Shown: positions 31,290-55,652 of the stretch, one piece after another
Numbering within the stretch: the stretch's first letter is position 1
Layout: every line of letters begins with the position of its first letter
Origin: Paramoeba atlantica
Lineage: Eukaryota; Protista; Discosea
Reading direction: 5' to 3'
NCBI GenBank assembly: GCA_977017575.1
Contig: CDRNVI010000037.1
Coordinates: 248,001-312,000 of the forward strand
Length of the DNA: 64,000 nt
The notes under the pieces: model-generated
The model's input: only the letters and a program-made list of their open reading frames with translations
Databases searched by the model: none
What the model was told of the DNA's origin: nothing
Made by a program: the position numbers and the translations under genes

Positions 31290-31740
31290 TAAAAAACATT
31301 CTCTCTCCTTCCCCTCTTTCTCTCTCACTTTCTCACCTCTTGACCTACTTTTCCCACCTTTCTCCCTACTTCCCTACTTTCCCTTACCCAACTTCTCAAC
31401 TTTTCAGGGAGGGTAAGGTCTCCCTCAGCTTCGCCTCACCCGGCCTGCAGGCGGCCCCTCAACCATTCACGCGTTTCGGACCGGGTCTTTCGACCACTCC
31501 TCGGCCTGACTTGTGAACCCTTCCCTTGTTATACGGGAGGGCGCAGGCGCGGGCCTGTGTCGACAGCGACACGGTCGCGAAACAGGATGCTGGCCGACTG
31601 GGAGGAGATTCACTACCCGTGTACTACCTCACTTGGTGTACCTAGTCCTCGCGGGCTAGGCGTGAGCATAGACTCTGTCGGCCCGACCAGCATCCAGGCC
31701 AGTGGTTTGTGGCCCCGCACATGGCGCCTTCGCCATGCCC

Positions 31741-35941: not shown

Positions 35942-36430
35942 ATGCACCGTTTTCTTACCCCCTCCCCTTCCCCCTCCCCCCTCCTCCTGGTCTTCGCCCA
36001 CCGCCTCACCCACCCCGACCTCCAGGAGCCTCCACTGGACCAGCAGCTCTTCCGCACCAAACCCTCCCGCGGCCCCCCGGTCGCCCACCAGCTCAATGTC
36101 TACACCCGGGCCCACAAACTTCACCAAAGTGCGAAATGGAAAAAGGCCAATCTCACGCTCAACTTTGCCGGGGGGAAGGACTTAAGATTACGCGATACCC
36201 ACGGGGAAGGGAGGCTGGACGCGGACGGGATGTACCGGGATTGGCTGTATGGCACCGAGCGACGGTCCGCGAACCTGCTTTGTGGGGGTCTAGCGGTTCT
36301 GGTCGCGCTGCTGTATTGCTATTCCATGCATTTGCTGCGGCAGGATACGTGGGAGATTCCCGCGAGTTTGTTGCACAAGCCCAAGGTGGTGGGGGGTGGG
36401 GAGGGGGAGAGGGGGAAGGGTGTGTCGTGA
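35942..36430 (+). CDS. Small mitochondrial membrane protein, COA3/CCDC56-like C-terminus
   Basis: RRSANLLCGGLAVLVALLYCYSMHLLRQD resembles the COA3 R..N...(TM)...Y.Y......Q pattern; similarity by eye only. Confidence 0.45.
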   Translation: MHRFLTPSPSPSPLLLVFAHRLTHPDLQEPPLDQQLFRTKPSRGPPVAHQLNVYTRAHKLHQSAKWKKANLTLNFAGGKDLRLRDTHGEGRLDADGMYRDWLYGTERRSANLLCGGLAVLVALLYCYSMHLLRQDTWEIPASLLHKPKVVGGGEGERGKGVS

Positions 36431-36649
36431 TCGGGTGTTTGTTGCTCTATGGGGAAAGGTATTATGTATAGTATGTGTGATCCAGAAGTTCTTTTTGCCC
36501 CAGTTCTTTTTGCCCCTGTATATGTGATCCTCCTGCATGTACGAATGCATACAAAGCTCTGCTACCCACTCGCTGCTACTTATACGGTTTTTTGGATTTA
36601 TAGTATTTTTTTCTCTTGTTAGTGCTGCTATTTTTTTTGTGTCCTCTTC

Positions 36650-38563
36650 ATGATGCCTCGATATCTATTTCTTCGTTCCCTCTCTCTTAAACTGGTTCGA
36701 TCTGGAACCCTTCTCCACCTTTCGCATCGTTCCTACACCAACGCGATCGTCTATGGCTCGGGCAGACTGGGTACCGCTCTAATTGCTGCACTTTCCAGAG
36801 CTCACACTCCCCCCGAACGATCTACCCGGAAGGAAGAAACGAGACCCAAGTCGAGTACGAATCCTACTTCGAGCAAACGAACCAATTCTTCTTCCTCTCC
36901 CTATTGGAATGCCTACCGTGCGCTATCGCTCCCTCTTCGCCTGGGGTTTGTTGTGCGAGACACCGAAGCGGCTCAGAGCTTACGTCATAAACGACAGTCA
37001 CCTGTTTTTTCGCAATATCAGTTGCCTCGTTCGGTTTCTATTCTTTCTAATGGCTTGGAGATGGAATCGTTCTTAGAATCGCCCTCGGAAAGGGACGATT
37101 TGCCTCCTGTTGTTTTCCTAGCGCTCCCGGCTCGTGCACTACGGGAGGTGATTCAACCCGGGAGCGGGTTTCGTGCTCTATTTCCAAAATCCACAAATTG
37201 GCCTTCGATTTCCCCAATTGTTGACTTAAGAAGTGCGAAATCGAAACAAAAACTCGGAGAACAGGAGAAAAAAGAGACAACGAAAACGCAAAATGAAAAT
37301 ACGGATTCCGATGATCATTCTCAAAGCTCTGCTTTGAGAAGGAAGCCATCTTGTGTTCCAAAAGACGCCCCCCTCCCTCTCGTCGTGTTGGCTACCCGTG
37401 GAGTGGATGAGGAGGGTCGGCTGCCTCACCAGTACCTTCCGTGTGGAGTCCCATACGTCTACCTCGGTGGTCCAATGGATCCGAGTGATATTGTCGACGG
37501 CAAGCCGACATTTATTGTGGCCTCCGGTAATGCGGGTGAAAAATATGAAACCCTTGTTCGGGAAATGCTCACCTGCGAGGATCTGCGGTATCCCTTTGTG
37601 GTTGGCACTGTGTCCTCTAGGAAACAGCCGTCATCATCTCCGGACACACGCGTACATCACAGTACCCCTCTGTCGGGTATTGGTGTGCTCGACCTGCCTC
37701 TGATTGCCCAGCCGGAGGGGAGAAACAATCAAACCAGCCCTCAATGTAACGAAACCGGACAAGATGAAAAGGATTCAGCTCCAACTTGGGTTTCCCCTAT
37801 TTCTTCCTCTTCTTGTTCATCTGAATTCTCTTCGCTAGAGACCGCAATTTGTGCCGCATTTGGCCATTTCATCGCTCTCGGCTGTGGGGTGTTAAGCACC
37901 CAGTGGGGAGGCTCCTTCTCTCCGTTCTGTGCCTACCTCACGCGTTGTACCGAGGAGGTCCATGAGTTTCTCCACGCTCTCGGACTGAACGCTTCTGTGG
38001 CCTATTCCGTCGCAGGTCTTGGAGAGTTTCTCTCTTACGCCAGCGCGCGGAGGAGTTCATATTTTGTAATGGGCACACGACTCGCCCATGGCCTCCCGGG
38101 GTCGTATATTTCGCAAAAAACCAAACATCACGAGCCCCATGAAGCGGCACTGGAGCTGTTGGGGATTACCAAGTGGTTGGATCATGTAGAGGGGTTGCTG
38201 GTGAGAGCCCGGCAGAGCCCATCTCCGGAAAAAGAGCAAAGAAACAACGCTGCCGAGGGTTTGCAATATGGAGAGTGTGAGACAAATGGGGAGGACGAAC
38301 GCTCTCCGCTACCTTTGCTGCGCGCCACAGTGAAAGTGCTCCGAAATGAGCGCCGGGTATCGGAGTTTGCGGTGCTCGCGCTCGCTCCCTCGGCTGAGCA
38401 AATGAGGTATCGGAGTGTACAACATCCGTTGCTGTCCACCATGAACGTATTTTTTCATCACGTCGAACAGCCTAGTACACAGACAAAGGATGCAATGGAG
38501 CAACTGCGATTGTCGACCCCCGCGCCCCCGCCCGCGATACGCTCCTGGATGGGGATGAAGTGA
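36650..38563 (+). CDS. NAD-dependent glycerol-3-phosphate dehydrogenase-like protein (degenerate active site)
   Basis: VYGSGRLGTAL Rossmann motif, LALPARALREV, LATRGV, LGGPMDP..IVDGKPT, TRCTEEV and AGLGEF align with GpsA blocks. Confidence 0.75.
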   Translation: MMPRYLFLRSLSLKLVRSGTLLHLSHRSYTNAIVYGSGRLGTALIAALSRAHTPPERSTRKEETRPKSSTNPTSSKRTNSSSSPYWNAYRALSLPLRLGFVVRDTEAAQSLRHKRQSPVFSQYQLPRSVSILSNGLEMESFLESPSERDDLPPVVFLALPARALREVIQPGSGFRALFPKSTNWPSISPIVDLRSAKSKQKLGEQEKKETTKTQNENTDSDDHSQSSALRRKPSCVPKDAPLPLVVLATRGVDEEGRLPHQYLPCGVPYVYLGGPMDPSDIVDGKPTFIVASGNAGEKYETLVREMLTCEDLRYPFVVGTVSSRKQPSSSPDTRVHHSTPLSGIGVLDLPLIAQPEGRNNQTSPQCNETGQDEKDSAPTWVSPISSSSCSSEFSSLETAICAAFGHFIALGCGVLSTQWGGSFSPFCAYLTRCTEEVHEFLHALGLNASVAYSVAGLGEFLSYASARRSSYFVMGTRLAHGLPGSYISQKTKHHEPHEAALELLGITKWLDHVEGLLVRARQSPSPEKEQRNNAAEGLQYGECETNGEDERSPLPLLRATVKVLRNERRVSEFAVLALAPSAEQMRYRSVQHPLLSTMNVFFHHVEQPSTQTKDAMEQLRLSTPAPPPAIRSWMGMK

Positions 38564-38931
38564 AAGGCGAAAGTTTAGCAAAACGGAATTACGTTCCCTC
38601 ACACAACACGTATGGAAGACAAGCCAAAGTACTGTGTTGGATACAGCTTTGCGGGTCGTTGTGGGGTATGTCTCCACTGACCCTTAGTTTTCTCTTTCTA
38701 AAGAACCATAAGTTCTTTTAGTTTCTTGCACCTTCTGATCCAGAAGATTAAATTTATTTCTAAAGTGTTAAGCCGAATAAAAATGCAAGTGATGTCGCCT
38801 ACGTCTATGAACTTATCCGTTACTCAAGGATTTTCGGGGTTTGTTTGAACACGCTATTTTTTCAAGTTGTTTATTTCGTGAGAAATAGAAAGCCGAAAAC
38901 GCCCTTGGATAAGATTAATCTTGCTTGTAAA

Positions 38932-39834
38932 ATGTTTCCCTGCTTTTATTTCATGCTCATCATGACGTTAACGCTTCACGTACATCTATCGGATACACAA
39001 CAACCTTCAATCAAACGTCAGCCAACCGATCCTAGTTCAGAGTTTCCTATATCGATTATTCGTGCCAGTAAAGTAAACACGAATCTACCACAAGAATATG
39101 AACTCGCTCGATTTATTGAAGATATGAAGAATCCTGACCCTTCATGGAACACATCGACGCCTGCGTGTGAGTGGAATTATGTACACTGTGATGATAGCCA
39201 ACGTGTTACAAAACTTGATTGGAAATGGGTAAGAAAGACTCATAGATCCGCTCTGGTTGCTGCAGGAATACTAAGATGGGAATGGTTGCCTCGAACATTG
39301 CTTTCTTGTGACGTATACCACAACCTGTTTACAGGTCCAGTATCGCTTGATGTGTTACCACCTCTCCTTATTTCGCTGAAGCTATCATGGAACAAGTTTA
39401 CCGGTTCATTGGACTTTATTCATTTGCCGCCCATGTTAGAAGAACTCCGGTTAAACAAGAACGAATTTGAATGGCGTGTTGACTTGACACAACTGCCACA
39501 GAATTTACGTCATCTAGACTTCTCGGAGAACAACCTTTCTGGTCATCTTCAGCTTTCTTGTCTACCGGACAAAATGCGATCTCTTAATTTGTCATCGAAT
39601 CAATTTTCGGGATCTCTTTCGCTCCAACATTTACCAGCCTCGCTTAGAGGTCTAACCTGTTCCTCTAATTCCTTCTCGGGTTCAGTCAAGTTTGATTCTC
39701 TTCCGGCAGGAATGAAACTACTGTGTCTAGGGATGAATATAGATTTGTATGGTGAGATTGATGGGTCCCTTTTACCTAAGAAGCTGAAGACCTTGAATTT
39801 CCACAGTACAAAAATTGTGTATAAACGCGGATAG
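38932..39834 (+). CDS. LRR family copy 5
   Basis: NLPQEYELARF, WNTSTPACEWNYVHC, tandem LRRs; recent duplicate of 55653-56555. Confidence 0.9.
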   Translation: MFPCFYFMLIMTLTLHVHLSDTQQPSIKRQPTDPSSEFPISIIRASKVNTNLPQEYELARFIEDMKNPDPSWNTSTPACEWNYVHCDDSQRVTKLDWKWVRKTHRSALVAAGILRWEWLPRTLLSCDVYHNLFTGPVSLDVLPPLLISLKLSWNKFTGSLDFIHLPPMLEELRLNKNEFEWRVDLTQLPQNLRHLDFSENNLSGHLQLSCLPDKMRSLNLSSNQFSGSLSLQHLPASLRGLTCSSNSFSGSVKFDSLPAGMKLLCLGMNIDLYGEIDGSLLPKKLKTLNFHSTKIVYKRG

Positions 39835-40827
39835 CTTTCGTTCGTAACATGATCATCTTATCTTAATCCCCACCATCTAAGATAGGGATACAGGGGGGAA
39901 AAAAGTTATGTCAACGAAAGTCGAGGCAACAAAAGTTGCGTGAACAAAAGTCGTGTTACACTCAACACAATTATTTCTGTAACAAAAAACAGGAAAACAA
40001 AAATTTATGTATTTTTTATTGTGCAAAATTTTTAAAAATGAAAATTTTATTTAAATTTGTTTTGCTCAAATTCCAAAAAAACTGATTTTTAACCTAAACG
40101 AGGGTCCGGTTTAGCATACCTGTGAGCTCGCACCATACCGGAGGGGTTATGGTACCGTGCGCAGGGCCGATAGCATACCCCCCCCTGGTTTTTAGTAGTT
40201 CCCCCTGGTTCTCTTTAGCAGTTCTGAATGGTTGTGCCTAACTCCTTTTTTGTTTGTGTTTAACTTTCTTTTCAATATACACACACAGTACATTACTATT
40301 CATACCGAATTACCTTCATACCATTACTATTCCACATCTGTCTTTGAATGGTCTGGCTTACCAGTGAGCGTCCGGAGCAATCCGGAATGATTTGGATTGG
40401 ATTGGATTTATCCATACCGCCTACATTTCCCCCAACAAAAAAAATCTCCACAAATATTTGTGCAACAGAAATTTGTGAATTTTTTATTGTGCAACAATTT
40501 CAAAAGTGATCAAACCCCATTACTTGGAAGGTATGCCTGTTTGGCCAGTTTCTTTTCTCCCAACTTTGTTTGCGAATTTATTCTAATTTTTTCTTCTGAA
40601 GACTTATTAAAACGCTTATTTGGGTTACTCCCGAATCCCCCAACATACGGACATACACCCCCTACTCCCTATACTCGTCCTGTGGGTCTCCGATCCAAAC
40701 CTCTCTTACTGGGGCCCAAAAAGGGTGAAACCTCTATAGCTGGGGGGTGTATTACTCGGGGGGTCTACGGTAGATGATTATCCATCTCCTTCAATAAATA
40801 TTTTTCATACTTCAATACTTTTCCTTT

Positions 40828-41397
40828 ATGGACATCTTTCGTGCACATAAAGTGCGTGGTACTTCTCTTCCGCCTGAGTTTATGCTTATTCGAATGATTG
40901 AAAATATTCAGAACCCGCATTCATCATGGACGGCAGATATACCAATATCTAAGTGGAAGGGGGTAATGTGTTTGGAAAGCGGTGACATTGACAAAATTAG
41001 GTTTGAAAGGAGTAAGCTACAAGGACCTCTACGGTGGGACATGTTGCCTCGCTCACTGACACACTTTGGTGTTTATTCAAACAAACTAATGGGGGAAGTA
41101 GACCTCAGTGAATTGCCCCCAAAACTGAAATTTTTAGATGGTTCTTATAACATGTTTACGGGAGGACTTGATTTATGTCATCTTCCAATGTCACTTGAAG
41201 AGATCTTCTTTTCTGAGAACAAGTTAAGTGGGCGAGTTGATTTTTCTCATCTTCCACATCGTTTGTGTTCACTTGCTTTGAGACACAATCGATTACTTGG
41301 GGGTGAGATGCGTCTTCGTGAACTTCCTTCAAGTTTAAGTTATCGTCCAATATTTGAAACTTCGATTGTAGTTATTGATGATTCTGCAATAAACTAG
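40828..41397 (+). CDS. LRR family copy 6 (short)
   Basis: KVRGTSLPPEFML, SWTADIPISKWKGVMC, about 4 LRRs. Confidence 0.85.
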   Translation: MDIFRAHKVRGTSLPPEFMLIRMIENIQNPHSSWTADIPISKWKGVMCLESGDIDKIRFERSKLQGPLRWDMLPRSLTHFGVYSNKLMGEVDLSELPPKLKFLDGSYNMFTGGLDLCHLPMSLEEIFFSENKLSGRVDFSHLPHRLCSLALRHNRLLGGEMRLRELPSSLSYRPIFETSIVVIDDSAIN

Positions 41398-41739
41398 GTA
41401 GCATACTACTTTAAGTACAGTGGTGTAAGATGTCGATTTAAAACAATAGCATGGTTGAATGAACGAATTACATACACTATCCTATTACTGAATTACATAC
41501 TGTATCTTACAGTAACTCAAGAAAGTGTTCAAATGTTTCGACATTTTTCCATATTTCTATTTTGGCCAAAGAGAATCAGAAGATGATGCCGTAGTATAAG
41601 GTAATAGTGTAGGGTGGAGTAGTGCTTACATTCAACTTTGTCAACGGTCCTCTATTACTGGGGGTCAGCCCAAAAGGATCCAAACCTCTATTACTGGGGG
41701 GGTCTATTACCGGAGGGGTATACGGTAACAAACCATCTA

Positions 41740-42583
41740 AACCACCGTCCGTGTTATATTACCTAGGGACACCTATTGTACCTCCTAGGTATAACAAGTG
41801 TCCCTAGGGTCCTTATTATACCTCCCCCCCTACCGCATCAGAGGCAGGTGTAGAACTTACAGGACCGTAAATTTGGATGTTGGAGGGGTCTAAAATTTGT
41901 AAGCCTTGGCCCATTTTGGAAAGGTATAGCGCATTCGAGAGCTCTCGAACAGGGCTCATGAACGTGCAGGCACGGAATCTTCGTTATTTGGATTTTCGAA
42001 TGCACATAGTACACTTTATTTTTTGGTAGACAAAATCTTTCATTTTTCACAATTTTTCTGATTTTCCCCCTGATTTATGCCACAGACGGGATTACGGACG
42101 ATCACCTTAACGTAAACTCTCCGAAAGGGTTAATTCTTCGCCTGGACACGTAAAAGCATACTGGTGCATGCCCTTTGTTGTCGACTACGAGTTTTCTCCT
42201 CACTGCGCGTAAATTTCAATGTTGCGTTTGATGAGTGAAACTTACCAAGAAAGCAGATTGACATTGTCAAGAGTTTTGACCAGTTGGGGTATAGTAACCA
42301 CGAAAATACATGTATTCGTGGCATTTCATATTCTTTTACCCCTGAAGCCTCAGGAAATAAACTTACTCCCACACTCGCACACGTTCTCCCAGGCGTTCCC
42401 CCAGGCCCGTCCCCCCAGGCGCAAGAGGGAAACTTGCAAATGGATCGTAACATGTTGTGGGCAATGTTAAAAATTTCGCGCCGCTTCGCGGCGCGAAATT
42501 TTTTTCACCCTTTTTGCAAAGCAAAGTTATTATACCTAGGGACACTTATTATACCTCCTAGGTATAATAACCCGGACGGTGGT
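41740..42583. mobile_element. MITE family F, uninterrupted copy
   Basis: Collinear with 23147-24258 plus 25868-25905. Confidence 0.85.
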
Positions 42584-42599
42584 GACCCCCCAACAGCGG

Positions 42600-43062
42600 A
42601 TATCCCGCTTTTCTGTTAGGAGATATTCAATAGCCTTGGGTATGGCCTCTCGCAATTCATGCCTATTTTTCGGACGCAAAGAACTATGAATGTGGTCATC
42701 CATGATTGACCACAAGTTTTCTATCAAGTTTAAGTCAGATGACTTTGAGGGCCAATCAATAATGTTTAAGCCTGCTTGCAATCCCGCTCGACGGGCTTGC
42801 CCATGACCCGGTGCAATAACAGAGAATTGCATCCTTTAATAGACAATTTTAACGGGATTTGCACAATTTTTACATAAATTTGCATATTTGTTGGAGATTT
42901 TTTTTTATTTTTTTATACCAATTTTTACAGGTGTGTTTAAATAGGCGCAAAATGTCGTTCCGATCATATTCGCGTCGAGATCTCTCTTTTGCAACAAAAA
43001 TCAGGTGAAACGGACACATAGCACAAAAATGGGAGGTGTCCCGATATTGGTGATCCTCCCTG
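42600..43062 (-). mobile_element. Second Tc1 family deletion derivative with transposase C-terminal fragment
   Basis: APGHGQARRAG...IDWPSKSSDLNLIENLW; TIR ending ...gatcctccctg-TA. Confidence 0.8.
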
Positions 43063-43227
43063 TATTATTTAAATAGCGATTTAAATAATATACCGTTCCC
43101 CGGGTTACACTAACTTCGCTATTTTTCTTTAGTTTCTTTTGAACCGCTTTTTAATGGTTACAAAGAACACAAAACAACACCCCTAGCCTCCCCCCCGTAG
43201 TCTCGCACGTCGTCTCAACATCATCAC

Positions 43228-44184
43228 ATGTCACCTCTTCCCCTTCCATTCCACCTCCGTACCCTTACCTCCAGTACTATCACAACCCCCCTTGCGTCGT
43301 TTTTTCACCCCTTCTCACTTCCTTACCCAATCCCCTTCTCTCCTCTCGGCTTCCCCTCTCCCCGATCCGATATCATAATCCCCGCCCCATGGTCCTTCCC
43401 GAGTCGTCTCCCTTCCCGTTCTCCCCCAACCCCCACAATCACAACAACCCCTCTACTTCCTCCCCACTCGACCTCCATGCTCTCACGACCACAACACCCA
43501 ACTCATCTACACCCCCACACCCCCTCCCCTTCCCCCTCCCCCACCCCCACCCCCCTCTACACCACCAGTCCCTACTTTCAAAAATCCTTTTTCTCTTTTT
43601 TATTTCTCTCCACACTCTCCTTCATGGTTTGGCTACGTAACCAATCCATTGCCTCCTGCTCTGTAGGAGACCCCAACGAGACCCTTCCCAACGGGTCACC
43701 TTTACAAAACAACAGTTGTTGTAATCCCCACAACTCGTGTAACGGATCACCACGCCTTAAGTATTGTGACACCCCCGAGGAGGTCGAATCCGTGATCCGC
43801 TCACGTGACCCGAGGCGACCCCCTTGGCCGGTGCTTCACCACAGGGCCACACAGATGCGTGAGGGGAAGCTCCCTCTCACGGGGGTGCAGGAGCTGTGGG
43901 AGGCCACCGCCTACTACTACCCCGCGGACTGGCTGATTCCGCTGGAGTTGGCCCAGGTGTTAAAGTACACCACGGGGCGGTACCTGAAACGAGTGGTACG
44001 GGACCCCGAGGGGTTCCGACGGGAGCTGATGGTCCAGCTGATTCAAATCAAGCATGGACGGGTGAGAGGGGTGGACCGGGTGAGTGGGGAGTTGTGGGAG
44101 ATTTTGAGTGGAGCGATTGAGGAGTTAAGTCGGATGGATTTTCGGGATATGGAGGAGATACCGATTGCACCGACCCATCGGTAG
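43228..44184 (+). CDS. Hypothetical protein with one TM segment and a C-terminal helical domain
   Basis: 318-aa ORF. YYPADWLIPLELAQVL recalls the C-terminal extension of long-form bacterial phenylalanine hydroxylases (by eye only). Confidence 0.75.
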   Translation: MSPLPLPFHLRTLTSSTITTPLASFFHPFSLPYPIPFSPLGFPSPRSDIIIPAPWSFPSRLPSRSPPTPTITTTPLLPPHSTSMLSRPQHPTHLHPHTPSPSPSPTPTPLYTTSPYFQKSFFSFLFLSTLSFMVWLRNQSIASCSVGDPNETLPNGSPLQNNSCCNPHNSCNGSPRLKYCDTPEEVESVIRSRDPRRPPWPVLHHRATQMREGKLPLTGVQELWEATAYYYPADWLIPLELAQVLKYTTGRYLKRVVRDPEGFRRELMVQLIQIKHGRVRGVDRVSGELWEILSGAIEELSRMDFRDMEEIPIAPTHR

Positions 44185-45376
44185 ATGTAGGGGAGGGGGC
44201 GAAGAGGGTTGCGATGGAAGAGAAAGGGGAGGAGGGGGGTAGAGAACAGAACCTGTAGATTAGAATGGGTTCAATTTTTGAGAAGAATACGTTTCTTGTG
44301 AAATGTTGAGTATGTTTATGGCACACCGTTTTGAGGTGTTACTACACACCTCAGGGTTAAAATGCATTACAAACTACTGTAAGCATGATGTCTTGGGTAC
44401 AAAAATATCTAACTCATCCGTATTCTGGGAACGCTTTTTGATAGGTGCGGCAAGGTTTTTTAGGTAAAGTCCCCCTCATTTTCTCAGACCCCTCCCGTAC
44501 GATATAAACCATGTTCCAGGATAGTATACCCATGCCCACTTAAACCACATACCCGTTTAACATACCTATACCTTGGATAACATACCGGGGGGGTATGTTA
44601 TTCTGGTCTGCGACAGTTAACATACAACCCCCTCGTCCCACGTCTTTTTTTGTGCAACGGTACAAAACTCCAACCGTAATATCACGTACTTTTTTAACAA
44701 AATGTTTCTTTTATACGTTTTTAGATGTATTTTGATACGTTTTAGCATTTAGTACTACACGCGGTTAGTACTACACCCCCCCCTTTAATATGCACCCCCT
44801 TCCCTCCCCCCCCTTAATATGCACAAATTCCATGTTGAATTTTCGGAACGTTTTTTTGAGAGCAGATGTTTTGCCTATTTTTACCCAATTTCTTCAAAGG
44901 GCTTTGTGCTTTTAAGCCTCTGATGCGCATCTATGTATGTGGAGATAATATATATTTGTATACTTGTTCCTCTCTTTCTCCCGTACTTTTCACCCTTATG
45001 TCAGATACTGACGGAGTTCCGACCACAGTTCACTCTGTGCGTGGACCTCTGACCACTTGGCTTCGGAAGCTCCCTCCCCAACCGCAAGTAGGGGAGCGCA
45101 CATCCCTTATTATTAACAACACCCCGACGGTAACAGTTCAGGAAAAACGGCAGCGTACTGAACTTACTATATTCGAGAAACGAGAAATTTGTATGCAAAG
45201 AATCGAGAAAGCTCTACCATTTACACTGAAATGACACGTCTAACTTATTCTCTGAGCGGGATTTACATCGATGTAATTCGTTCTGGGTGGGTTACTGACG
45301 ATGTCTATGAGCGAATGTTAAAGAAATATTTACCCTATACTCTTGACAACCCCTCGACGGTTATTATCACGGACGA

Positions 45377-47266
45377 TTTCTTTTTTAGGCTCTTCGTTAA
45401 ACGCGGTGGTTGCTTTCAACTTAGAAGTCACTCATGCTGCGCGCTTCGCGTTGAAAACTACCGCCGCGTTTAGCGAAGAGCCTAAAAAAGAAAATTTAGC
45501 CTGGAAAACGGAAAGATTATAGCCAAAAATAGCCGAATTTCGGGTAAAAATGGGGTCATTTTCGCATATTTTTGCTCTCAGAGCACTAAATCCGACATTT
45601 GCGCGTGGGAAATCACTCGTAGGTATGAATGGAAGCCTACCGAACGTATTGGGTGGAGAATGCGACTCCAACCATACCATTCTTTCGACACAAAAATGCC
45701 CCTTTAGGTCCGAAAAATACTTTTTCACCTTTTTTAGTCAAAAATGGGTCATTTTGGGGGGCGCACCACGGTTAGAAGAAGGGATACCTTGCGAAAGCAA
45801 CTGCGTAGAAAGCTAGTGTAGGTCCCAAACTATCAAAATACAATAGGGGAAACGATTTTGGAAAAATATTTTTTTTGTCATTTTTTTCGCCAAGTTGAAT
45901 TTTTTTTCAAAAAATTTTCTCCGAAAAAATCCGAACTTGGCGGACCCGTCCTGCGGATACGCGGGGGGGTTACCCCCGGGTAGGGGGGTGGAAAATGCGC
46001 GCCAAGACCCCGGCTACCCTTTCTGCAGTTTTTTTTCGAAAACTAATTTTTTCGAAAAAATTTGATCGACCATGCCCCCCCCCCCCTGGACCCCCCCCCC
46101 TGGACCCCCCCCCTGGACCCCCCCCCTGGACCCCCCCCATGGACCCCCCATTTTTTTCAAATTTTTTTTTCAGTTTTGGACCACCGGAGCCCCCTTTTAT
46201 AAGTCTTTCCGTTTTCCAGGCTAAAGTTTCTTTTTTAGGCTCTTCGTTAAACGCGGTGGTTGCTTTCAACTTAGAAGTCACTCATGCTGCGCGCTTCGCG
46301 TTGAAAACTACCGCCGCGTTTAAGGAAGAGCCTAAAAAAGAAACTTTAGCCTGGAAAACGGAAAGACTATAGCCAAAAATAGCCGAATTTCGGGTACAAA
46401 TGGGGTCATTTTCGCATATTTTTGCTCTCAGAGCACTAAATCCGACATTTGCGCGTGGGAAATCATTCGCAGGCATGAATGAAAGCCTACCGAACGTATT
46501 GGGTAGAGAATGCGACTCCAACCATACCATTCTTTCGACACAAAAATGCCCCTTTAGGTCCGAAAAATACTTTTTCACCTTTTTTAGTCAAAAATGGGTC
46601 ATTTTGGGGGGCGCACCACAGTTCGAAGAAGTGATACCTTGCGAAAACAACTGCGGAGAAAGCTAGTGTAGGTCCCAAACTATCAAAATACAATAGGGGA
46701 AACCATTTTGGAAAAATAATTTTTTTTGTCATTTTTTTCGCCAAGTTGAATTTTTTTTCAAAAATTTTTTTCCGAAAAAATCCGAACTTGGCGGACCCGT
46801 CCTGCGGATACGCGGGGGGGTCACCCCCGGGTAGGGGGGTGGAAAATGCGCGCCAAGACCCCGGCTACCCTTTCTGCAGTTTTTTTTCGAAAACTAATTT
46901 TTTCGAAAAAATTTGATCGACCATGCCCCCCCCCCCCTGGACCCCCCCCCTGGACCCCCCCCCCTGGACCCCCCCCATGGACCCCCCCCATGGACCCCCC
47001 ATTTTTTTCAAATTTTTTTTTCAGTTTTGGACCACCGGAGCCCCCTTTTATATTTTTTTCTTCTATTATATTACTGTGTTCCTCTTTATATTTTCACTGT
47101 TTTTGTTCACTTTTTTTTCAATAATCGAGTGTAGAGCGGTAGTTTTACAACCACCGCAATTTTTTTCTTCTATTATATTACTGTGTTCCTCTTTATATTT
47201 TCACTGTTTTTGTTCACTTTTTTTTCAATAATCGAGTGTAGAGCGGTAGTTTTACAACCACCGCAA
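45377..47266 (-). mobile_element. Element A copy, itself interrupted by a second copy at 46202-47159
   Basis: Outer copy = 45377-46201 plus 47160-47266; both insertions excise precisely at A|T. Confidence 0.9.
46202..47159 (-). mobile_element. Element A copy nested in element A, with 29-nt fold-back
   Basis: Removal restores ccccttttata|tttttttc exactly (7 T, as in the intact copy at 47041). Confidence 0.9.
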
Positions 47267-48447
47267 TTATACCGCTCATAGAACGAATAATGTACCAACG
47301 AATTGTGATCCACAGACGATACCCGGAGGGTGTACGAAAGCCACACAATTCCATGATCGCGTTTTTAATCGCTTATTCAAGCGTCAATATAATGAGCTTC
47401 TTAGCGCGTGGCGACTTCGAAATAGCGTCCAGAAGGTTACTCGTGCGCTTGTTTTGCAATGGATTAAGGATGCACATGCACATGTATGGGCAAAAAACCA
47501 AAGCACTTTATTAAAAGTAGCACAAACTTACATTTTGCGACCTGCGACTGAGTACCCTTGGATTGAGTCAAGCGTTACAGTTGGCTCAAAAACTACTCTT
47601 GGAATATGTCCTGAACATGCCGTCTCACCCTCCTCAATTTCAAAAGGAGAAAAACTCACACAAGAATCCATTGTGGTAGAAGATAGTGCGGGCAACACGT
47701 CCCACTATGACAAAGAGTGGAAACGATTCCGCGGTCGAAAGCGATTTCTTACGACGCATGCTGTTGATACATTATGCGAAAATGTATTGCAGGCATACCG
47801 TCTAGCCCCTTCCGCAGACAAAAAGAATAGTTTGTTTTGAACACAGGAAAGACTCGATTACTTTTAGGTTTTCAGCGCAAACTGTTCAGTCAAATTTTCC
47901 CCGACTCACGAATTATTGCGGTGCTCTTTTTTAACAACCATTTTTTTTTCGTGGAACTCCGAAAGCATCTGTTGACAATATTTGATAGTTACGAGGATTA
48001 TTCTCCGATTTCTCGTCAAGATTTTCTTCAGTGCTTTCTAAAATTATTCTGTCCTCTTCTTGGTCACTCAATAGAGGATGTTCGTCTTCGACATGCTCCA
48101 GTCATGCAGCAGGAGCCTACGCTAAATGAATGTGGAATACATGTAGTGAACAATTTATGTTCATTCCTGTTCTATCCTGCCACATTCAGTAGGGTGAATA
48201 ATGTTTTGACCCGAAAGAATCTTTCTAAGTCATGGTGGCCGTGCGGACCAGGAATTCCATCACTTCCTGAAAAACAAAGTACTGACGAAGAAACCGTCGG
48301 AGCGCTCCGTGACTCAGATTCCGATTGTGAGTATACAATCAATTTGATAAAAGATGTGCAGTTTGAAGATGCGACCGCGGATGGATGGGAGCTGTCCGAA
48401 AATTAATGACGGAGATGCAAATTCCTATCCAAAATAAGTTTATGTGC

Positions 48448-49305
48448 GCGCTATTATACTCAAATTTTACACTGATATTTTTGCTTGACTTCTGCTTGAC
48501 TTTAAGAAAATCTTCTCGAGTTCGTGGGGCTCTACTGCCGCAGGAATACGATCTTTCTCGAGCCCTGCGCAACGTTCCTAATCTTCGAACCACGTGGACC
48601 ACAGACAATTCTGCATGTAAGTGGATGGGGGTAAAATGTGATGCTGACCTACAGGTTATAGAAATCAAGTGGAGTTATATGGGCCTTGAGGGTACGGTTT
48701 CATGGCGAGATTTTCCTCGAACACTTCGAGTTCTTATCATGGGACAATCTGCAGCATGGTACAGGAATAGGCTCACAGGATCTCTATCGAGTCCTGATTT
48801 ACCACCGTTACTCGCAATGTTTAACATCGAATTCAACAATTTTAGCGGCGAAATAGCCCTAGAATATCTGCCAGCTAACCTTCTATCATTTGAAGTCGCA
48901 CAAAATTCCTTTGAAGGCACAGCATCAATTCATGCACTTCCTTTGACACTAATTAAGCTGGATCTTGATAAGAACCTTTTCTCAGGGCGGTTAAATTTAA
49001 TGAATTTGCCTTCAAAATTCGAACGTCTTCTCATGTCGAACAATATGTTCAGTGGGAGTATCGTTCTGACGCATCTACCAAACACGATATTGTACGTTGA
49101 TTTGTCAGACAACAATCTAAGCGGAGAAATTGATTTGTCCTCTCTCCCACCAGTACTCACTGATTTATCTTTACGTAACAATAACTTCTTCGGACACATA
49201 GACCTCTCTAATACGCCGGATTCTCTGTTACGGGTAGATCTTCTTGGTAACAACATTACTTCTGTGACACCATACCCATTCCCCGACATTTTGCTTCTTC
49301 GCTAA
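48448..49305 (+). CDS. LRR family copy 7
   Basis: RVRGALLPQEYDL, WTTDNSACKWMGVKC, about 8 LRRs; ATG chosen inside track ORF 48385-49305. Confidence 0.9.
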   Translation, partial: ALLYSNFTLIFLLDFCLTLRKSSRVRGALLPQEYDLSRALRNVPNLRTTWTTDNSACKWMGVKCDADLQVIEIKWSYMGLEGTVSWRDFPRTLRVLIMGQSAAWYRNRLTGSLSSPDLPPLLAMFNIEFNNFSGEIALEYLPANLLSFEVAQNSFEGTASIHALPLTLIKLDLDKNLFSGRLNLMNLPSKFERLLMSNNMFSGSIVLTHLPNTILYVDLSDNNLSGEIDLSSLPPVLTDLSLRNNNFFGHIDLSNTPDSLLRVDLLGNNITSVTPYPFPDILLLR

Positions 49306-49709
49306 TTGGGGATACGGGCATTTAAATGCAATCATTGCAATGCATTTGCATTCTTCCCATCTCCAACTCTTGTTTTGCTATTTGGCACAATATGATATTG
49401 TGCCCTCTTTCTTAGACACTGTTATTCACTCACTAGGTTTTTTTTGAATCCATTTTTTGTAGAATCCATCACCGCCATAAAAATGAGAAATAGAGAAACA
49501 CAGTACCAGCATATCTCTCTTTTGTTTAGAAAAACAGACATTTAGGTATTTTCTATAACCACAACCTCAGAACACATGAGAGAAAGAATATTACTACGTT
49601 GCACATTCATTCCTAAGATTTGCATTTCAGAGCAGTGAAACGACTTCAATGCTAGTGTATCACTACATTTTTCTTTTACCTGTGATTCTTCTCTCGGAAA
49701 ACCTCTATT

Positions 49710-51611
49710 GTGACTCGGCTGACCAGTACAGGCCATAAAAGTGATAGTGAAACACTTTTGCAAAATGTTTCCGAATACATCTCCCGGAGTGAAGATTTTC
49801 ATGGAAAAAAGAACAACACTGTATCTTCTACGCTGGAAGATCCTGCATTAGTGTCAAGAAAATTTGATAATAAATCTACGCTCAACACATTCGCTACTCA
49901 TACGGGGCGTTCACACGGAAGCGAAGCTCGGGCTATACACCCTCCCAAAAGCAGCCGTGCTTCTTTGAGGACACACCACAGATTTCTACATGGTCAGGTT
50001 TCGCGATGTGCGCATAAAAATTGTGCCGTCGAGAAATCTGTTTTTGACGTACAGCGCAAAGAGCCGAAGGGCAGGACCGGAGGAGTCCATCTTTCTAAGC
50101 TACCACAATCCAAGAAGAAAAATGAATACGGTCGAGGTACCTTGACAAAACAAAGAGAACGGTGTCATGCATCACGTAAACCTTGTCCTTCTTTAAAAAA
50201 CGGCTTTAGTTCAGGAGAAACTAAAAAGGTTGGTACGCGTCTTCAAGCGAGTGAAGTCTCTAGAAAATCAGACCGTGGTGCAAAATGTATGGTAAAAACA
50301 ACGAAAAAGAAAACTAAGAAATATGTAAAAGTAGACAGTTCATTGAAGGGCAAGCCAGAGAGTGTCCGAGCACAATCGAACGGTGATTCTCAAAATTCTT
50401 TTCTAGTAAATGCGCTACCCGATTTACCATGGACACCAAGCCTTGCAAATATCTCACAAATGTTATCAGAGTATTTCAATTCTGGCTCGTATAATGAAAA
50501 AAGCATTAGTACTCTGGAGCCTGAAGACAGCGTAACTACCTTAATGAATCATCATACTGTCTTGCCTCAAGGGCACTTAAAGGGTGCCCCTGCTCAAAAA
50601 AAGACCATATTGTCTTTACATTTTCCTTCTGGCAGTTCTTTGGTTTCTGATGCAGGTCTGTCAAGTTCCTACAATGCAGAGGAATCTCTAGATCGACTTT
50701 TAGATCAACTCTCCGAACTCAAACCAGTGGATAGCATCTCGTCTCTGGAAGAAGCCATGCAAGCTGATGGCTATCCAAGTTTGCCTGTCAATCGTAATGA
50801 ACAGGTGGGTCGCAACGAAAGGCTAGACTCCAGAAATGACGACGCTACCCGTCCATCGGTCGTATCGCAACCCTTACGAAGAACGAAGAGTCCAGTTCTT
50901 CAAAATTCTGAACTAAGCTACGATAGCGTTTTATTGGATGTCAGAAATCCCTTCACAGGTTTTAATTTGCTTGAATCGCCATCTTTTTACACCTCAAGTT
51001 TGTCCAATTTAACGAGTCTAAGCAACGCGTGGCTTGAAGAGAATCCCTATGAAGGAAAATCGTATTCCGATTCCGAGTTTGATTTAGAATCTTATTCCGA
51101 TGTTAACTTTCCGTTACATTCTACAGATCCTCTGTATTTTTCCGATAGGCCGAAGTCCCGTTCTTCTTTGCGAGGTGATGAAAAGGAAGCAGTCATTCTT
51201 ACCACGCCGCGTAGTCCTGCAGGAATGAACACAAATCCGGACTTTAGTCCAATACCATGGAGATGTAGTCATATAGAAAAAACGAATTCGACCTCATCGG
51301 TACGTGTTCCGTGGTCACTCTCTGGAACAAAATCTTATTTTAACCCAAATTTTCAGAGCGAACAAAGTCCTTTATCACAAAGGCCTGCGAATGTGAGGCC
51401 TCATAAGTCAAATTCCGGCAGATTAGGTGTAGATTCTTCTGTCCTTGGTGATAAAGTTGTCAGTGGCTGTGCTGTTTCGGACCAGAGTGAGAAAGAGAGC
51501 AAACAGGAAAACAGTGGTACACGAGAAACTCCTATCTCATCGCTTTGGACCTATGTTGAGCGAATACTGGAATGTTTCACATTCCTTTTTTGTAGGTGCT
51601 TTCAGCGTTGA
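49710..51611 (+). CDS. Ser-rich low-complexity protein; probable true start at ATG 49649 in another frame (signal-peptide-like), implying a frameshift
   Basis: The long frame has no Met for 193 codons. ATG 49649 encodes MLVYHYIFLLPVILLSENLYCDS and overlaps it. C-terminus RILECFTFLFCRCFQR. Confidence 0.7.
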   Translation: MTRLTSTGHKSDSETLLQNVSEYISRSEDFHGKKNNTVSSTLEDPALVSRKFDNKSTLNTFATHTGRSHGSEARAIHPPKSSRASLRTHHRFLHGQVSRCAHKNCAVEKSVFDVQRKEPKGRTGGVHLSKLPQSKKKNEYGRGTLTKQRERCHASRKPCPSLKNGFSSGETKKVGTRLQASEVSRKSDRGAKCMVKTTKKKTKKYVKVDSSLKGKPESVRAQSNGDSQNSFLVNALPDLPWTPSLANISQMLSEYFNSGSYNEKSISTLEPEDSVTTLMNHHTVLPQGHLKGAPAQKKTILSLHFPSGSSLVSDAGLSSSYNAEESLDRLLDQLSELKPVDSISSLEEAMQADGYPSLPVNRNEQVGRNERLDSRNDDATRPSVVSQPLRRTKSPVLQNSELSYDSVLLDVRNPFTGFNLLESPSFYTSSLSNLTSLSNAWLEENPYEGKSYSDSEFDLESYSDVNFPLHSTDPLYFSDRPKSRSSLRGDEKEAVILTTPRSPAGMNTNPDFSPIPWRCSHIEKTNSTSSVRVPWSLSGTKSYFNPNFQSEQSPLSQRPANVRPHKSNSGRLGVDSSVLGDKVVSGCAVSDQSEKESKQENSGTRETPISSLWTYVERILECFTFLFCRCFQR

Positions 51612-51813
51612 ATGCTCTTCTTAAGTAGATTAGAGCGTTTGTGCAGTATTACTTCGTGGATAGGTTTCGCCAATACAGATTGCTGAAATTTTGCTTTTGA
51701 GCAAAATCAAAGGCGGTCATTGTATGACCTAGTAGTAGAGCATAAAATTTTTTAGTTAGAGCCTCACTGAGTTGTATTCTTGTAGTTTCTATGCTTGCAC
51801 ATGTGATAAGCTA

Positions 51814-51908
51814 CTGGACCCCCCACTAGTTATCTGTCACACCCCTACCCCTCTAGTTTCTGTCACCTTTTGACCAAAAGTAGTGACAGATAACTAAGGG
51901 AGGTACAG
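51814..51908. mobile_element. 95-bp mini-MITE (tagttatctgtcac iterons)
   Basis: TA-flanked inverted ends; related end at ~19984-20040. Confidence 0.65.
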
Positions 51909-52300
51909 TATATTGAACGTGTTCTAACAATTACCCCCCCAGTAATAGAATCAGTTTCGAGCCAAAATAGTTAAATCTCTGTTAGTGGGGGAATGTTTTT
52001 TTGTAGGAAAAGAGCTCTTTTACTCGTGAGTGCAATGATTTTCTGCCCAGCCAGGCCCGCAACTAAGCGATCCCCGCCCGCCCAATCACCCTCATCCTGT
52101 CCTCAATAACTTCTTTTCATTTCGCTTCATGAACTTTTCAAATGGACACTGCAAGTTTACCCTTTCTGTGGATGGCACAGGATGGAACGAAATGGCACAG
52201 GATGGCGCGGCGAGTCTAGTTTTAGGAATCTTCATCCTCCTAAGTAGCATTTTAAAATTGGAGTAAATTTTCGGATGCTCTTTTGTACTGTAGTTTTGCA

Positions 52301-53199
52301 TTGCGGTGGTTGTAAAACTACCGCTCTACACTCGATTATTGAAAAAAAAGTGAACAAAAACAGTGAAAATATAAAGAGGAACACAGTAATATAATAGAAG
52401 AAAAAAATATAAAAGGGGGCTCCGGTGGTCCAAAACTGAAAATTTTTTTTGAAAAAAATGGGGGGTCCATGGGGGGGGTCCAGGGGGGGGGTCCAGGGGG
52501 GGGGGCATGGTCGAGCAAATTTTTTCGAAAAAATTAGTTTTCGAAAAAAAACCGCAGAAAGGGTAGCCGGGGTCTTGGCGCGCATTTTCCACCCCCCTAC
52601 CCGGGGGTGACCCCCCCGCGTATCCGCAGGACGGGTCCGCCAAGTTCGGAATTTTTCGGAAAAAATTTTTTGAAAAAAATTTCAACTTGGCGAAAAAAAT
52701 GACAAAAAAAATATTTTTCCAAAATCGTTTCCCCTATTGTATTTTGATAGTTTGGGACCTACACTAGCTTTCTACGCAGTTGTTTTCGCAAGGTATCACT
52801 TCTTCGAACTGTGGTGCGCCCCTCAAAATGACCCATTTTTGACTAAAAAAGGTGAAAAAGTATTTTTCGGACCTAAAGGGGCATTTTTGTGTCGAAAGAA
52901 TGGTATGGTTGGAGTCGCATTCTCTACCCAATACGTTCGGTAGGCTTTCATTCATGCCTGCGAGTGATTTCCCACGCGCAAATGTCGGATTTAGTGCTCT
53001 GAGAGCAAAAATATGCGAAAATGACCCCATTTTTACCCGAAATTCGGCTATTTTTGGCTATAATCTTTCCGTTTTCCAGGCTAAATTTTCTTTTTTAGGC
53101 TCTTCGTTAAACGCGGCTGTAGTTTTCAACGCGAAGCGCGCAGCATGAGTGACTTCTAAGTTGAAAGCAACCACCGCGTTTAACGAAGAGCCTAAAAAA
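52301..53199 (+). mobile_element. Element A copy (no fold-back extension)
   Basis: gca|TTGCGG ... gcctaaaaaa|tattg. Confidence 0.9.
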
Positions 53200-53929
53200 T
53201 ATTGTTTGATAATTCATAATTTGGAGGTGTATTTACGTCACGAGTGGGGAGGTAAGTAAGCACAATCTTCCAGCTACCCTAATCTTCTCGTGCGAAAAAA
53301 GCGCGGTCGTAGTGATGATGAATTGAAGCAAACTAACTTAGACCATTTCATTGTTTATGATAAGAATTGTACGGAAAGAACGGCTTCTTCAGATTCTCTT
53401 CACCTCACTATCCTCGAGTCATGAACTCATTAGAACTTATGGGAGAGAAGCAACGTACTATAAAAAACGTTAACCACCGCGTTTAATGGAGCGACTACAA
53501 ACTTGTACTGATAGTTGTTACTGCTTATGAGTTCCTCCAATTCTGGTGCGCTTATGAGTTCCTTTTTCTAAGGCGAATGTTTTTGTACCCACTTTTCGCG
53601 AAGCGATCTTTTTATGCACAGAACCCAAATCCCAACGACCGTACGTCCCGCTGCTCTACAGACTCGCTCACTGAGCGGATAATCATTTTAGCGCCAGTAT
53701 CATTGTCAAGGAGAACCCGCGGCTCTTCGCGCCGCGGGCCCGATTTTTCGCGTTTTTATGGCTCGAATTCTGGTCTGGTACGCTTATGAGTTCCTTTTTC
53801 TCAAAACCGGGGAACTCATAAGCAGGAGGGGTATAGTGCTTGGAACCACCCCGTCTTTTCTTGTAAATGGGTACCAAGATCCACATGAAGACGAGCGCCA
53901 TAGGTGGTCATTGTGCCGAAAATCTTCGC

Positions 53930-54533
53930 TCTGGATGGTACAGGATGTCACGAAATGGCACAGGATAGCACCGAATGGCACAGGATGGCACAGGATGGCA
54001 CAGGATACAGTAAAAGTCACATGATGGCACAGGATACAGTAAAAGTATTTTTCGGACCCCAAGGGGCCTTTTTGCGTCGAAAGAATGGTGTGGTTGGAGC
54101 CGTATTCTCTACCCAATACGTTTGGTAGGCTTTCTTTCCTGCCTACGAGTGATTTCCCACACGAAAATGTCGGATTTAGTGCTCTGAGAGCTAAAATACG
54201 CAAAACTGGCCCTATTTTTACCTAAAAATCGGCTATTTTTGGCTATAATCTTTCCGTTTTCTTCAGGTTTCCTGGCCAAATTTTCTTTTTTAGGCTCTTC
54301 TTTTTTTTCTTTCCACGATTTTCTAGGGAATATTCAGACATAGAGATGATAATTCGAAGATCGTAATTTCTTTTTTAGGCTCTTCGTTAAACGCGGTGGT
54401 AGTTTTCAACGAGAAGCGCGCAGCATGAGTGACTTCTAAGTTGAAAACAACCACCGCGTTTAACGAAGAGCCTAAAAAAGAAATTACGATCTTCGAATTA
54501 TCATCTCTATGTCTGAATATTCCCTAGAAAATC
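53930..54533 (+). mobile_element. Element A variant with (atggcacagg)n repeats and a 217-bp terminal palindrome
   Basis: 54040-54300 is homologous to the element A 3' half; 54317-54533 is an inverted repeat around the standard loop. Confidence 0.8.
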
Positions 54534-55063
54534 CTGGGCCGATAAGCAAGTACATCATTCGAAGCCCCCCTTTGCAAGTCGTATGAATTCTTTTCCAGTC
54601 TCAGCAACGGTACCCCATTCCACTGAAGGCAAACGAGACAACGCTAGGATAGGGGGAGAGTACTATTAGGTATAAAGAGGAAGTGCAGAAGCTGTATGGA
54701 ACTTTTTTGGCCTTTCCCATTTTTGGTTCTCAAATGGAGTTGCACGTTGACATGGCCATTCAGAGACGCATTCTCATTTTTAAAATAGCTTTCTCATTTT
54801 TCCTAGTTGCACGTTGACAGCCCAATTCTCATTTTTAGTGATTCTCAGAATTGTGACTTTTACTGTAACTGTATAGTGTTCAATGGACCATCGACGAGTT
54901 TAAACCCTCTTTTACTCATGGGTGCATTGATTTTCTGTCCAATCAGACCACGAGCTCAGCCATACCCGTCCGCCCAACTATTCTCGCTCCCTCCGACTAT
55001 CAACCCGTCCCCCATTTCTTGCACCTCCTGATCCGGAAGATTAAATCTATTTCTAAAGTGTTA

Positions 55064-55489
55064 CAGTGCGCCCAGTTAGTAAAGTCCCAAAACACGGTTT
55101 TCCCAAATAGTAAAGTTTTTTTTAGTAGTTACCTTTTTTTAGAGTTTTTCTCTTTTTCGAAGATTTTTGTGTAAAAGAAATTGATTTCATTTCATCTACT
55201 TTTTTTAAATTATGACAACGGACATTCGCATATAACTTGCGTTGAAAAGCGTTCCATTGAAAAGGACGAAAAACGACGAAAGCAGACGTTGTGCATGTCT
55301 CGAAAAGCGAAAACAAGGTTTGAAAATGCCTGAAAAACAGAGAAAGGTTTTCCCTGTGCTTCAACGACAATTGATTGACCATTTAGTAAAGTCCCAAAAA
55401 ACGGTTTTCCCAAACAGTAAAGTTTTTTTTAGTAGTTACCCAAAGTCGGTGGTAACTACTAAAAAAAACTTTACTATCTGGGCGCACTG
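55064..55489. mobile_element. Tc1/mariner-type MITE (TIR cagtgcgcccag(t/a)tagtaaag), 426 bp
   Basis: TA duplication; the empty site aaagtgtTAagccg is present in the paralogous locus at ~38765. Confidence 0.9.
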
Positions 55490-55652
55490 TAAGCCGAATA
55501 AAAATGCAAGTGATGTCGCCTACGTCTATGAACTTATCCGTTACTCAAGGATTTTCGGGGTTTGTTTGAACACGCTATTTTTTCAAGTTTTTTATTTCGT
55601 GAGAAAGAGACAGCCGAAAACGCCCTTGGATAAGATTAATCTTGCTTGTAAA

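Follow-up and report, generated by a model that had tools for sequence, protein, structure and literature searches.

Copy-specific, self-templated extensions at the 3' terminal hairpin of element A, a putative Helitron-type transposon

Element A and its termini

The window analysed here, a stretch of 64,000 nucleotides (nt) of Paramoeba atlantica contig CDRNVI010000037.1 (positions 248,001 to 312,000 of the forward strand; assembly GCA_977017575.1), carries several copies of a non-coding repeat of approximately 0.9 kilobases (kb), found by self-comparison of the window and called element A, whose variable 3' end is the subject of this report. From 5' to 3' the element comprises a small 5' hairpin (9-bp stem; -8 kcal/mol, z = -6.3 on folding), a C-rich microsatellite at mid-element and, at its 3' extremity, a 109-nt hairpin with arms of 40-44 nt and a 29-nt loop (-40 kcal/mol, z = -9.3). 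This second hairpin extends to the terminus, and hairpins are thus present at both ends. The terminal inverted repeats are asymmetric, in that the 5' TTGCGGTGGTTG has its complement, CAACCACCGC(G), within the outer arm some 30 nt before the 3' terminus; a 12-nt inverted repeat thereby links the 5' end with the outer arm of the 3' hairpin. The microsatellite, with CCCCCCCCTGGA-like units at 46075-46150 and 46925-47000 and at the equivalent site in other copies, differs in unit number among copies.

An 82-98-amino-acid chance open reading frame (ORF), running from the interior of the element into the loop, served as the handle for further copies and gave 32 clusters in a long-read-style assembly at ENA. 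Twelve loci were fetched by way of these clusters, one of which (L007) is the same locus as the window, and the survey therefore comprises the window and 11 loci, with approximately 33 hairpin copies on 12 contigs in about 330 kb of sampled DNA; in 29 of them the 3' end can be read. The inner 40 nt of each hairpin arm together with the loop occur seven times in the window and again in every related locus fetched. No Rep/helicase gene was found in the window or the 12 fetched loci, and neither an Rfam scan of the window nor a metagenome scan with the outer arm returned any match.

The 5' boundary, A|TTGCGGTGGTTG, is unvarying in 27 copies, and a host A precedes TTGCGG in 27/27 intact 5' ends, the terminus itself being TT(GCGG) rather than TC. 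At the opposite end a host T can be read directly after the element in approximately 24 of the 29 copies (a tally from the printed junctions), including the copy at 46202, which bears out the original prediction that the variable end is joined to a target T. CTAA is the exact 3' terminus in three copies (L012_7959, L001_11150 and L006_10134), and most others continue beyond it. On these sequence features element A is predicted to be a non-autonomous rolling-circle (Helitron-type) transposon that inserts between host A and T without target duplication; a Helitron-type target is here paired with Helitron2-type termini. The ancestral 3' end appears to have been CTAA, a CTRR tetrad. Older subfamilies stop at CTA, CTAA or CTAAA and are then followed by T, and younger lineages are read as terminating 4 to 15 nt beyond CTAA.

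We note that private substitutions in the hairpins of young copies (e.g., 46231-46339, 45381-45489 and 53091-53199) are unevenly distributed, with 11 in the inner arm as compared to 2 independent ones in the outer arm (p ~0.02). In active lineages there is probably constraint on the outer arm, in which the terminal inverted repeat and CTAA are located.

A nested copy with a 29-nt extension

The copy at 46202 (c46202; 46202-47159, minus strand), which begins at its 5' end with TTGCGGTGG, carries an extension of 29 nt. An inverted repeat at 46202-46370 on the minus strand pairs arms of 69 nt (46202-46270 and 46300-46368; 94% complementary) around the 29-nt loop (46271-46299, in the orientation common to all copies), and its folding energy as single-stranded DNA is -74.8 kcal/mol (z = -16). 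The constant outer, or 3', arm (46231-46270), which contains CTAA and, in CAACCACCGC, the 3' half of the asymmetric terminal inverted repeat, ends on the element strand in ...GAGCCTAAAAAA, from the last A of which we count all 3' end positions. Past it lie 29 extra bases (46202-46230), the final part of the element before the host T at 46201, and these are the exact reverse complement of 46344-46372, the interior segment that adjoins the inner, or 5', arm and its TTTC foot (46300-46343).

The original prediction had described this fold-back and had held that two private substitutions of the inner side were mirrored in the outer arm, and the non-consensus bases do pair as described, 46344 with 46226 and 46367 with 46203. 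The base at 46367 is private to this copy; that at 46344 recurs in one other copy, L006_9309, and is hence not strictly private. A third non-consensus base, at 46324 in the stem of the inner arm (position -16), has no mirror at 46246, again as predicted. Three of the five private substitutions of c46202 fall within 46324-46367, a 44-nt span at the hairpin's inner foot (p ~0.004), which suggests a single error-prone tract of synthesis.

Read along the element strand, the pair at 45377 and 46202 gives two 5' units in succession, then a body and hairpin, the 29 nt, and a second body and hairpin. A tandem duplication of the two copies was considered and rejected, since the insertion is nested and restores its target exactly: excision of 46202-47159 recreates GAAGAAAAAAA^TATAAAAGG, identical to uninterrupted copies. 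We conclude that a complete element, c46202, entered c45377 at AAAAAAA^TATAAAAGG, between host A and host T, with target bases neither lost nor duplicated. The host copy was split by this insertion into its body and 3' hairpin (45377-46201, minus strand, with a 4-nt extension) and, upstream of the insertion, a 5' unit of about 108 nt with the 5' hairpin (47160-47266, minus strand). As the A^T site is intact, the 29 nt either arrived with the inserted DNA or were later added without a scar.

Variation of the 3' end among copies

Across the 29 readable copies the 3' ends span -5 to +11, with outliers at +29 and +54. The negative ends stop inside the outer arm, at CTA, CTAA or CTAAA, one copy ending at -5, three at -4 and three at -3. 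Two copies end at 0, three at +1, one at about +2, three at +3 and four at +4; five more lie between +5 and +8, one lies between +6 and +9, and the remaining three end singly at +11, +29 and +54. The extensions are therefore not constant, as had been proposed, yet their position tracks subfamily, with older copies at -5 to -3, intermediate ones at +3 to +8 and young ones at 0 to +11. In the copy tree the young copies are star-like and the tree is disturbed by indels, so that heritability of end position can be used at the subfamily level only.

Within the window the extension lengths given in the original prediction were reproduced: 0 nt in c53199 (52301-53199, plus strand), 1 nt in c30335 (30335-31234, minus strand), 4 nt in c45377, 5-6 nt in c4226 (3335-4226, plus strand; GAAAA[T]), 29 nt in c46202 and 54 nt at 54533. 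An old, diverged and internally shortened copy (21965-22690, minus strand) ends at approximately +1 with no clear extension. The proposal that each hairpin carries an extra inverted copy of its own interior holds in that extensions are templated on the copy's own inner strand, and needs correction in that several copies end inside the outer arm; at 54533 the template arm is undecidable.

Two side observations concern individual copies. At L001:8786-8883 the inner arm is deleted, with about 25 nt of other sequence in its place; the loop is intact, as is the outer arm (+4, then T). The flanks of c30335 (30290-30335 and 31236-31290) are mutually inverted (ACATTAATCTGTGT... and ...ACACAGATTAATGT), and this copy seems to sit inside another palindromic or terminal-inverted-repeat-bearing sequence.

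The extensions match their own inner strand

With the 54-nt case set aside, the extensions amount to 98 bases in 17 copies, all of which match the inner strand of the copy in which they occur, and a chance origin of these matches is excluded. The outer side is the added side in every copy with a canonical interior. A second copy with mirrored variation is L005_10236 (+11), in which the inner arm bears a private T-to-C change at -5 that has its mirror in the outer arm (CCTAGAAAA) and a private change at -15 that has none. Three fixed mismatches between the arms of the proximal stem are retained in young copies, as had been noted before. Because -5 is mirrored, -15 and -16 are unmirrored and the three proximal mismatches persist, we read the distal part of the palindrome as templated by the copy's own strand and the proximal part as not so templated, with the boundary between -15 and -5. 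To a lesser degree L012_3458 agrees, its extension matching its own variant interior one base beyond the consensus, which is weak evidence.

The acceptor sequence TTGAAAAAAAAG adjoins three copies whose ends differ (-4, +3 and +5) and equals position 39 of the 5' unit of another copy. The same acceptor with differing ends places the raggedness in the incoming DNA and not in the target.

This junction, in which a 3' end is followed by TTGAAAAAAAAG (L012:4059 and 7959; L008:10321-10353; L006:15411-15452), recurs at 5'-unit position 39, ATTA^TTGAAAA, a site that resembles the true 5' end, A^TTGCGG. It could be either a hot target or a pseudo-5' end that yields head-to-tail and nested arrays. In L008_10206 (L008:10319-10353) the end is GAA, followed by 33 nt of another copy's 5' unit and then by unrelated DNA; these 33 nt cannot stem from the unit of L008_10206 itself, which has a G variant. 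The tail is probably a 3' read-through transduction from a nested donor. Since L008_10206 carries 33 nt of a foreign 5' unit past its end, termination in this family is taken to be genuinely loose.

The 54-nt palindrome and genomic context

The longest extension belongs to a more complicated locus on the plus strand. An old-subfamily interior (54041-54303), 86-88% identical to young copies, stops 19-22 nt into the inner arm, and this end is directly repeated (54282-54303 equals 54367-54388, 19-22 nt). Next to it lies a near-perfect palindrome of 225 nt (54313-54537), in which a core hairpin (54367-54483; copy c54483) stands between 54-nt inverted arms of non-family sequence, the template arm being undecided. 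The outer arm of c54483 opens as an ordinary "+4 then T" junction (GAAA|TTACG...). No second occurrence of the 54-nt arm sequence was found in the window plus loci L001-L007 (about 190 kb), and its faint likeness to the family interior is not significant (63 of 500 shuffles score as well); homology therefore gives no direction of copying.

The window itself is gene-dense, with gene clusters on one strand and long ORFs nearly all on the plus strand. On a sister contig, the ATP synthase beta subunit is closest to PDB 6f5d and 8ap6, which we take to be from Trypanosoma brucei, ahead of 6tdu, presumably from Euglena. These features point to a euglenozoan, kinetoplastid-like genome rich in DNA transposons and in elements bearing reverse transcriptase. 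For trypanosomatids, a mobilome survey reports retrotransposons only (PMC12278014), and on that basis an abundant Helitron-type DNA transposon in a kinetoplastid-like genome appears little documented.

A possible origin of the extensions

The explanation that we rank first, while holding it tentatively at somewhat under an even chance, is that the 3' hydroxyl (3'-OH) at the foot of the hairpin was extended by snap-back synthesis on a transposition intermediate. In the Helitron model, the hairpin pauses the helicase, a tyrosine nicks the 3' tetrad and the free transposon 3'-OH attacks the 5' phosphotyrosine (PMC4778049). As the hairpin of element A reaches the terminus, this free 3'-OH would be able to prime synthesis on its own strand. 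Right-end cleavage would leave the 3'-OH at the foot of the folded hairpin, with the interior strand as a 5' overhang, and a DNA polymerase might then extend it on its own strand, mostly by a few bases and occasionally by tens. The transposase would join whichever 3'-OH exists to the 5' end or to the target T. A brief fill-in of this kind before strand transfer would give variable, self-templated ends and an unaffected 5' end, and the target junction would be exact, since no particular sequence is required of the attacking 3'-OH. End-joining polymerases are known to make snap-back templated insertions (PMC5068794). What we infer here is that the copying took place on a transposition intermediate rather than in the chromosome, and the polymerase responsible; the anatomy, the target, the ragged ends at known acceptors and the copy-specific, self-templated extensions are read directly from the copies.

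Daughters would inherit the longer stem, and the palindrome could lengthen stepwise. We therefore also consider a fuller version of the proposal, in which the intermediate is single-stranded, its free hairpin-foot 3'-OH is extended before strand transfer, and inherited stem growth acts as a ratchet that took CTAA-ended arms of 36 nt to 70-100 nt. This version is possible, and we would sooner doubt it than accept it.

Several observations weigh against snap-back extension on an intermediate. The ordering of end positions by subfamily indicates that they are partly inherited, with jitter, and not freely redrawn at each move; it agrees with a ratchet, in which a longer stem is cut further out, and no less with a small number of long-armed masters that terminate loosely. 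The long cases (+29 and +54) are both outliers to an otherwise short distribution, and in L005_10236 (+11) and L006_14531 (0) the next base is not T. The extension of L009_15153 matches the consensus over 9 nt and its own interior over only 6 nt, although this evidence is weak. The combination of mirrored and unmirrored substitutions in c46202 fits an error-prone nascent strand that folded back as its own template, which could equally have been transposition synthesis or chromosomal repair. Given the probable constraint on the outer arm, "private in the sample" does not equal "after insertion", and the timing of copying may not be deduced from private variants. Finally, the +54 case is at least as well explained by in-situ template switching that copied host flank inward, one event as compared to two.

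The original prediction thus fares unevenly. It had proposed that the free 3' end of a single-stranded intermediate snaps back and is extended during each mobilisation; templating on the own strand and the presence of the 29 nt inside the inserted DNA support it, whereas "each mobilisation" goes further than the ends allow, as these track subfamily and are at least partly inherited, and the 54-nt case is more economically read as made in situ. Outer arms share the private variants of their own copy at two sites in c46202 and at -5 in L005_10236, and L009_15153 departs from this pattern. The resemblance to parvoviral rolling-hairpin priming, which had also been raised, does not extend to the process itself: hairpin transfer of the parvovirus type was rejected because in all copies the loop faces the same way relative to the interior and the arm mismatches are identical and unflipped.

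Alternative explanations

Alternatively, the palindrome might have grown in place. After insertion, a replication or repair polymerase working at the 109-nt quasi-palindrome would have let its nascent strand fold back, copy sequence next to the other arm and return, mainly in the +11, +29 and +54 cases; such growth would have no connection with mobilisation. We consider this rather unlikely. It accounts for the order seen at c54483 (old interior, the opening 19-22 nt of the inner arm, a filler of 12-16 nt, inverted flank, full hairpin, GAAA|T, flank) by a nascent strand that folded back, copied host flank and re-annealed imprecisely, explaining the direct repeat and leaving an ordinary "+4 then T" end. 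The three clustered inner-side private substitutions of c46202, mirrored in the copied part and not in the stem, are the pattern of an error-prone self-template, and the missing host T of L005_10236 is likewise in keeping with growth in place. Template switching at inverted repeats is also well documented (PMC10766183, PMC7999016). What growth in place leaves unexplained are the 3-8-nt extensions of most young copies and the ends at -5 to -3. At c46202 it needs a blunt and scarless return to the template, with no microhomology, loss or duplication; an unambiguous inward copy is absent among about 30 copies; and the fixed arm mismatches stand uncorrected in young copies.

A further possibility, which we regard as distinctly unlikely, is that no synthesis accompanies individual moves: a few masters, each with a long and perfect distal arm from a single fold-back event, would have produced ragged daughters by imprecise termination in the A/T-rich, frayed stem. 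Such masters would agree with end positions that follow subfamily, with short extensions that in every case equal the family consensus, and with L009_15153, which is closer to the consensus than to its own interior. The tail of L008_10206, GAA and 33 nt of another copy's 5' unit, is consistent with read-through, and for Helitrons both read-through and truncation of de novo 3' ends have been described (PMC4778049). The bias in private substitutions (2 outer versus 11 inner) would also allow that many "private" variants are lineage variants that predate insertion. Even so, each master arm would still require fold-back copying, including one event after the c46202 variants arose. Cleavage would moreover have to follow A, G, C or T at more than 10 positions, which is unusual for a sequence-specific HUH nuclease, and no copy with a long consensus arm was found in the approximately 330 kb sampled.

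That the extended arms are an artefact of assembly or library preparation at a hairpin is very improbable. In the Logan contigs of four runs over 46020-46860 the short-read unitigs are 60-90 nt long because the family is extremely abundant; none bridges 46201-46231, and the junction is neither confirmed nor contradicted by them. Depth at 46201-46231 is below that of neighbouring bins, and loose unitig ends at positions 46201 and 46227 are in keeping with continuation of the 5' unit and with the 3' boundary usual in other copies. Against an artefact, L007 (ENA contig ctg3374l, 27 kb) matches window positions 36276-55606 over 19.3 kb without a mismatch, the sole differences being 10 one-base indels, all away from hairpins, so that two differently contiguated assemblies of one genotype agree on c45377, c46202, c53199 and the 54-nt palindrome. 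Each element ORF lies on a single contig and no second-haplotype contig of the locus was found, the assembly appearing collapsed. The phenomenon is furthermore graded, recurring in about 30 copies on 12 contigs, and the c46202 junction restores an exact target site.

A retroelement origin, in which the extension would be self-priming of complementary DNA (cDNA) after target-primed reverse transcription, as had also been suggested, is scarcely credible and was rejected: an A-rich 3' end and the reverse-transcriptase genes common in neighbouring loci would favour it, but the 5' end is precise and unvarying, the target is A^T with no duplication at the restored c46202 site, terminal inverted repeats, hairpins at both ends and an ancestral CTAA are present, and the A-run is fixed in length and belongs to the stem, with no variable-length poly(A).

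Comparison with known systems

Helitron transposition intermediates have been deduced mostly from one reconstructed bat element, and to our knowledge natural genomic evidence for a free, structured Helitron 3' end is scarce. If the extensions of element A were made on the intermediate, each insertion would record a polymerase run along the hairpin, a sequence-only readout of the single-stranded stage and a natural in vivo trace of the free 3' end that the rolling-circle model postulates. It would also offer a mechanism by which the terminal palindromes of rolling-circle elements lengthen and diversify. If they were made in place instead, the family would serve as a natural reporter, in a kinetoplastid-like genome, of template switching by fold-back at long palindromes. 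The two readings predict opposite and easily testable outcomes.

The Helitron and Helentron literature describes variable terminal T runs, read-through, truncated de novo ends, self-insertion and head-to-tail arrays (PMC4067079, PMC5148889, PMC4778049); self-templated extension of the 3' hairpin is undescribed in these three papers and in the literature consulted by full-text search. Like element A, the non-autonomous elements of Helitron2/Helentron (HINEs, DINE-1 and FoHeli of Fusarium) are non-coding, abundant and shorter than 1 kb, with an asymmetric terminal inverted repeat, hairpins at two ends, a 3' palindrome, variable terminal bases and no target duplication (PMC4067079, PMC5148889). 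They differ in target, which is T^T in Helentron/HINE as compared to A^T in element A, where the 5' host base is A in all copies. Their 3' palindrome measures 5-20 nt and is set back from the end, whereas that of element A measures 109 nt and runs up to the terminus, and their variable terminal bases are a run of T, whereas those of element A are templated by the opposite arm.

Canonical Helitrons (Helitron1; the Helraiser model) share with element A insertion at A^T without target duplication, a CTRR-type tetrad, which in element A would be the ancestral CTAA end that most copies run past, and a 3' hairpin as terminator, together with read-through, truncated de novo 3' ends, head-to-tail arrays and self-insertion (PMC4778049). 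Their 5' end is TC, however, and that of element A is TT; only element A has a terminal inverted repeat; and the canonical palindrome of 16-20 nt, about 11 nt before the 3' end, contrasts with a hairpin that is far longer and overlaps the terminus. Non-long-terminal-repeat retroelements and short interspersed nuclear elements are marked by target duplication, variable poly(A) and 5' truncation, which element A does not display.

By the mechanism proposed, element A would resemble parvoviruses in a 3'-OH at the foot of a terminal hairpin that primes on its own strand and in an HUH nuclease. Parvoviral hairpin transfer, with its flip and flop forms, has no counterpart in element A, in which the long hairpin is at one end only and a short extension would end in integration. 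The self-templated extension itself has known analogues in host repair: the snap-back insertions of polymerase theta and quasi-palindrome template switching (PMC5068794, PMC10766183) likewise leave short, inverted, adjacent copies at a 3' end or junction, with clustered substitutions. Those copies are host repair scars at breaks or forks, whereas the copies in element A lie at a defined transposon terminus with an intact target junction of the transposase type.

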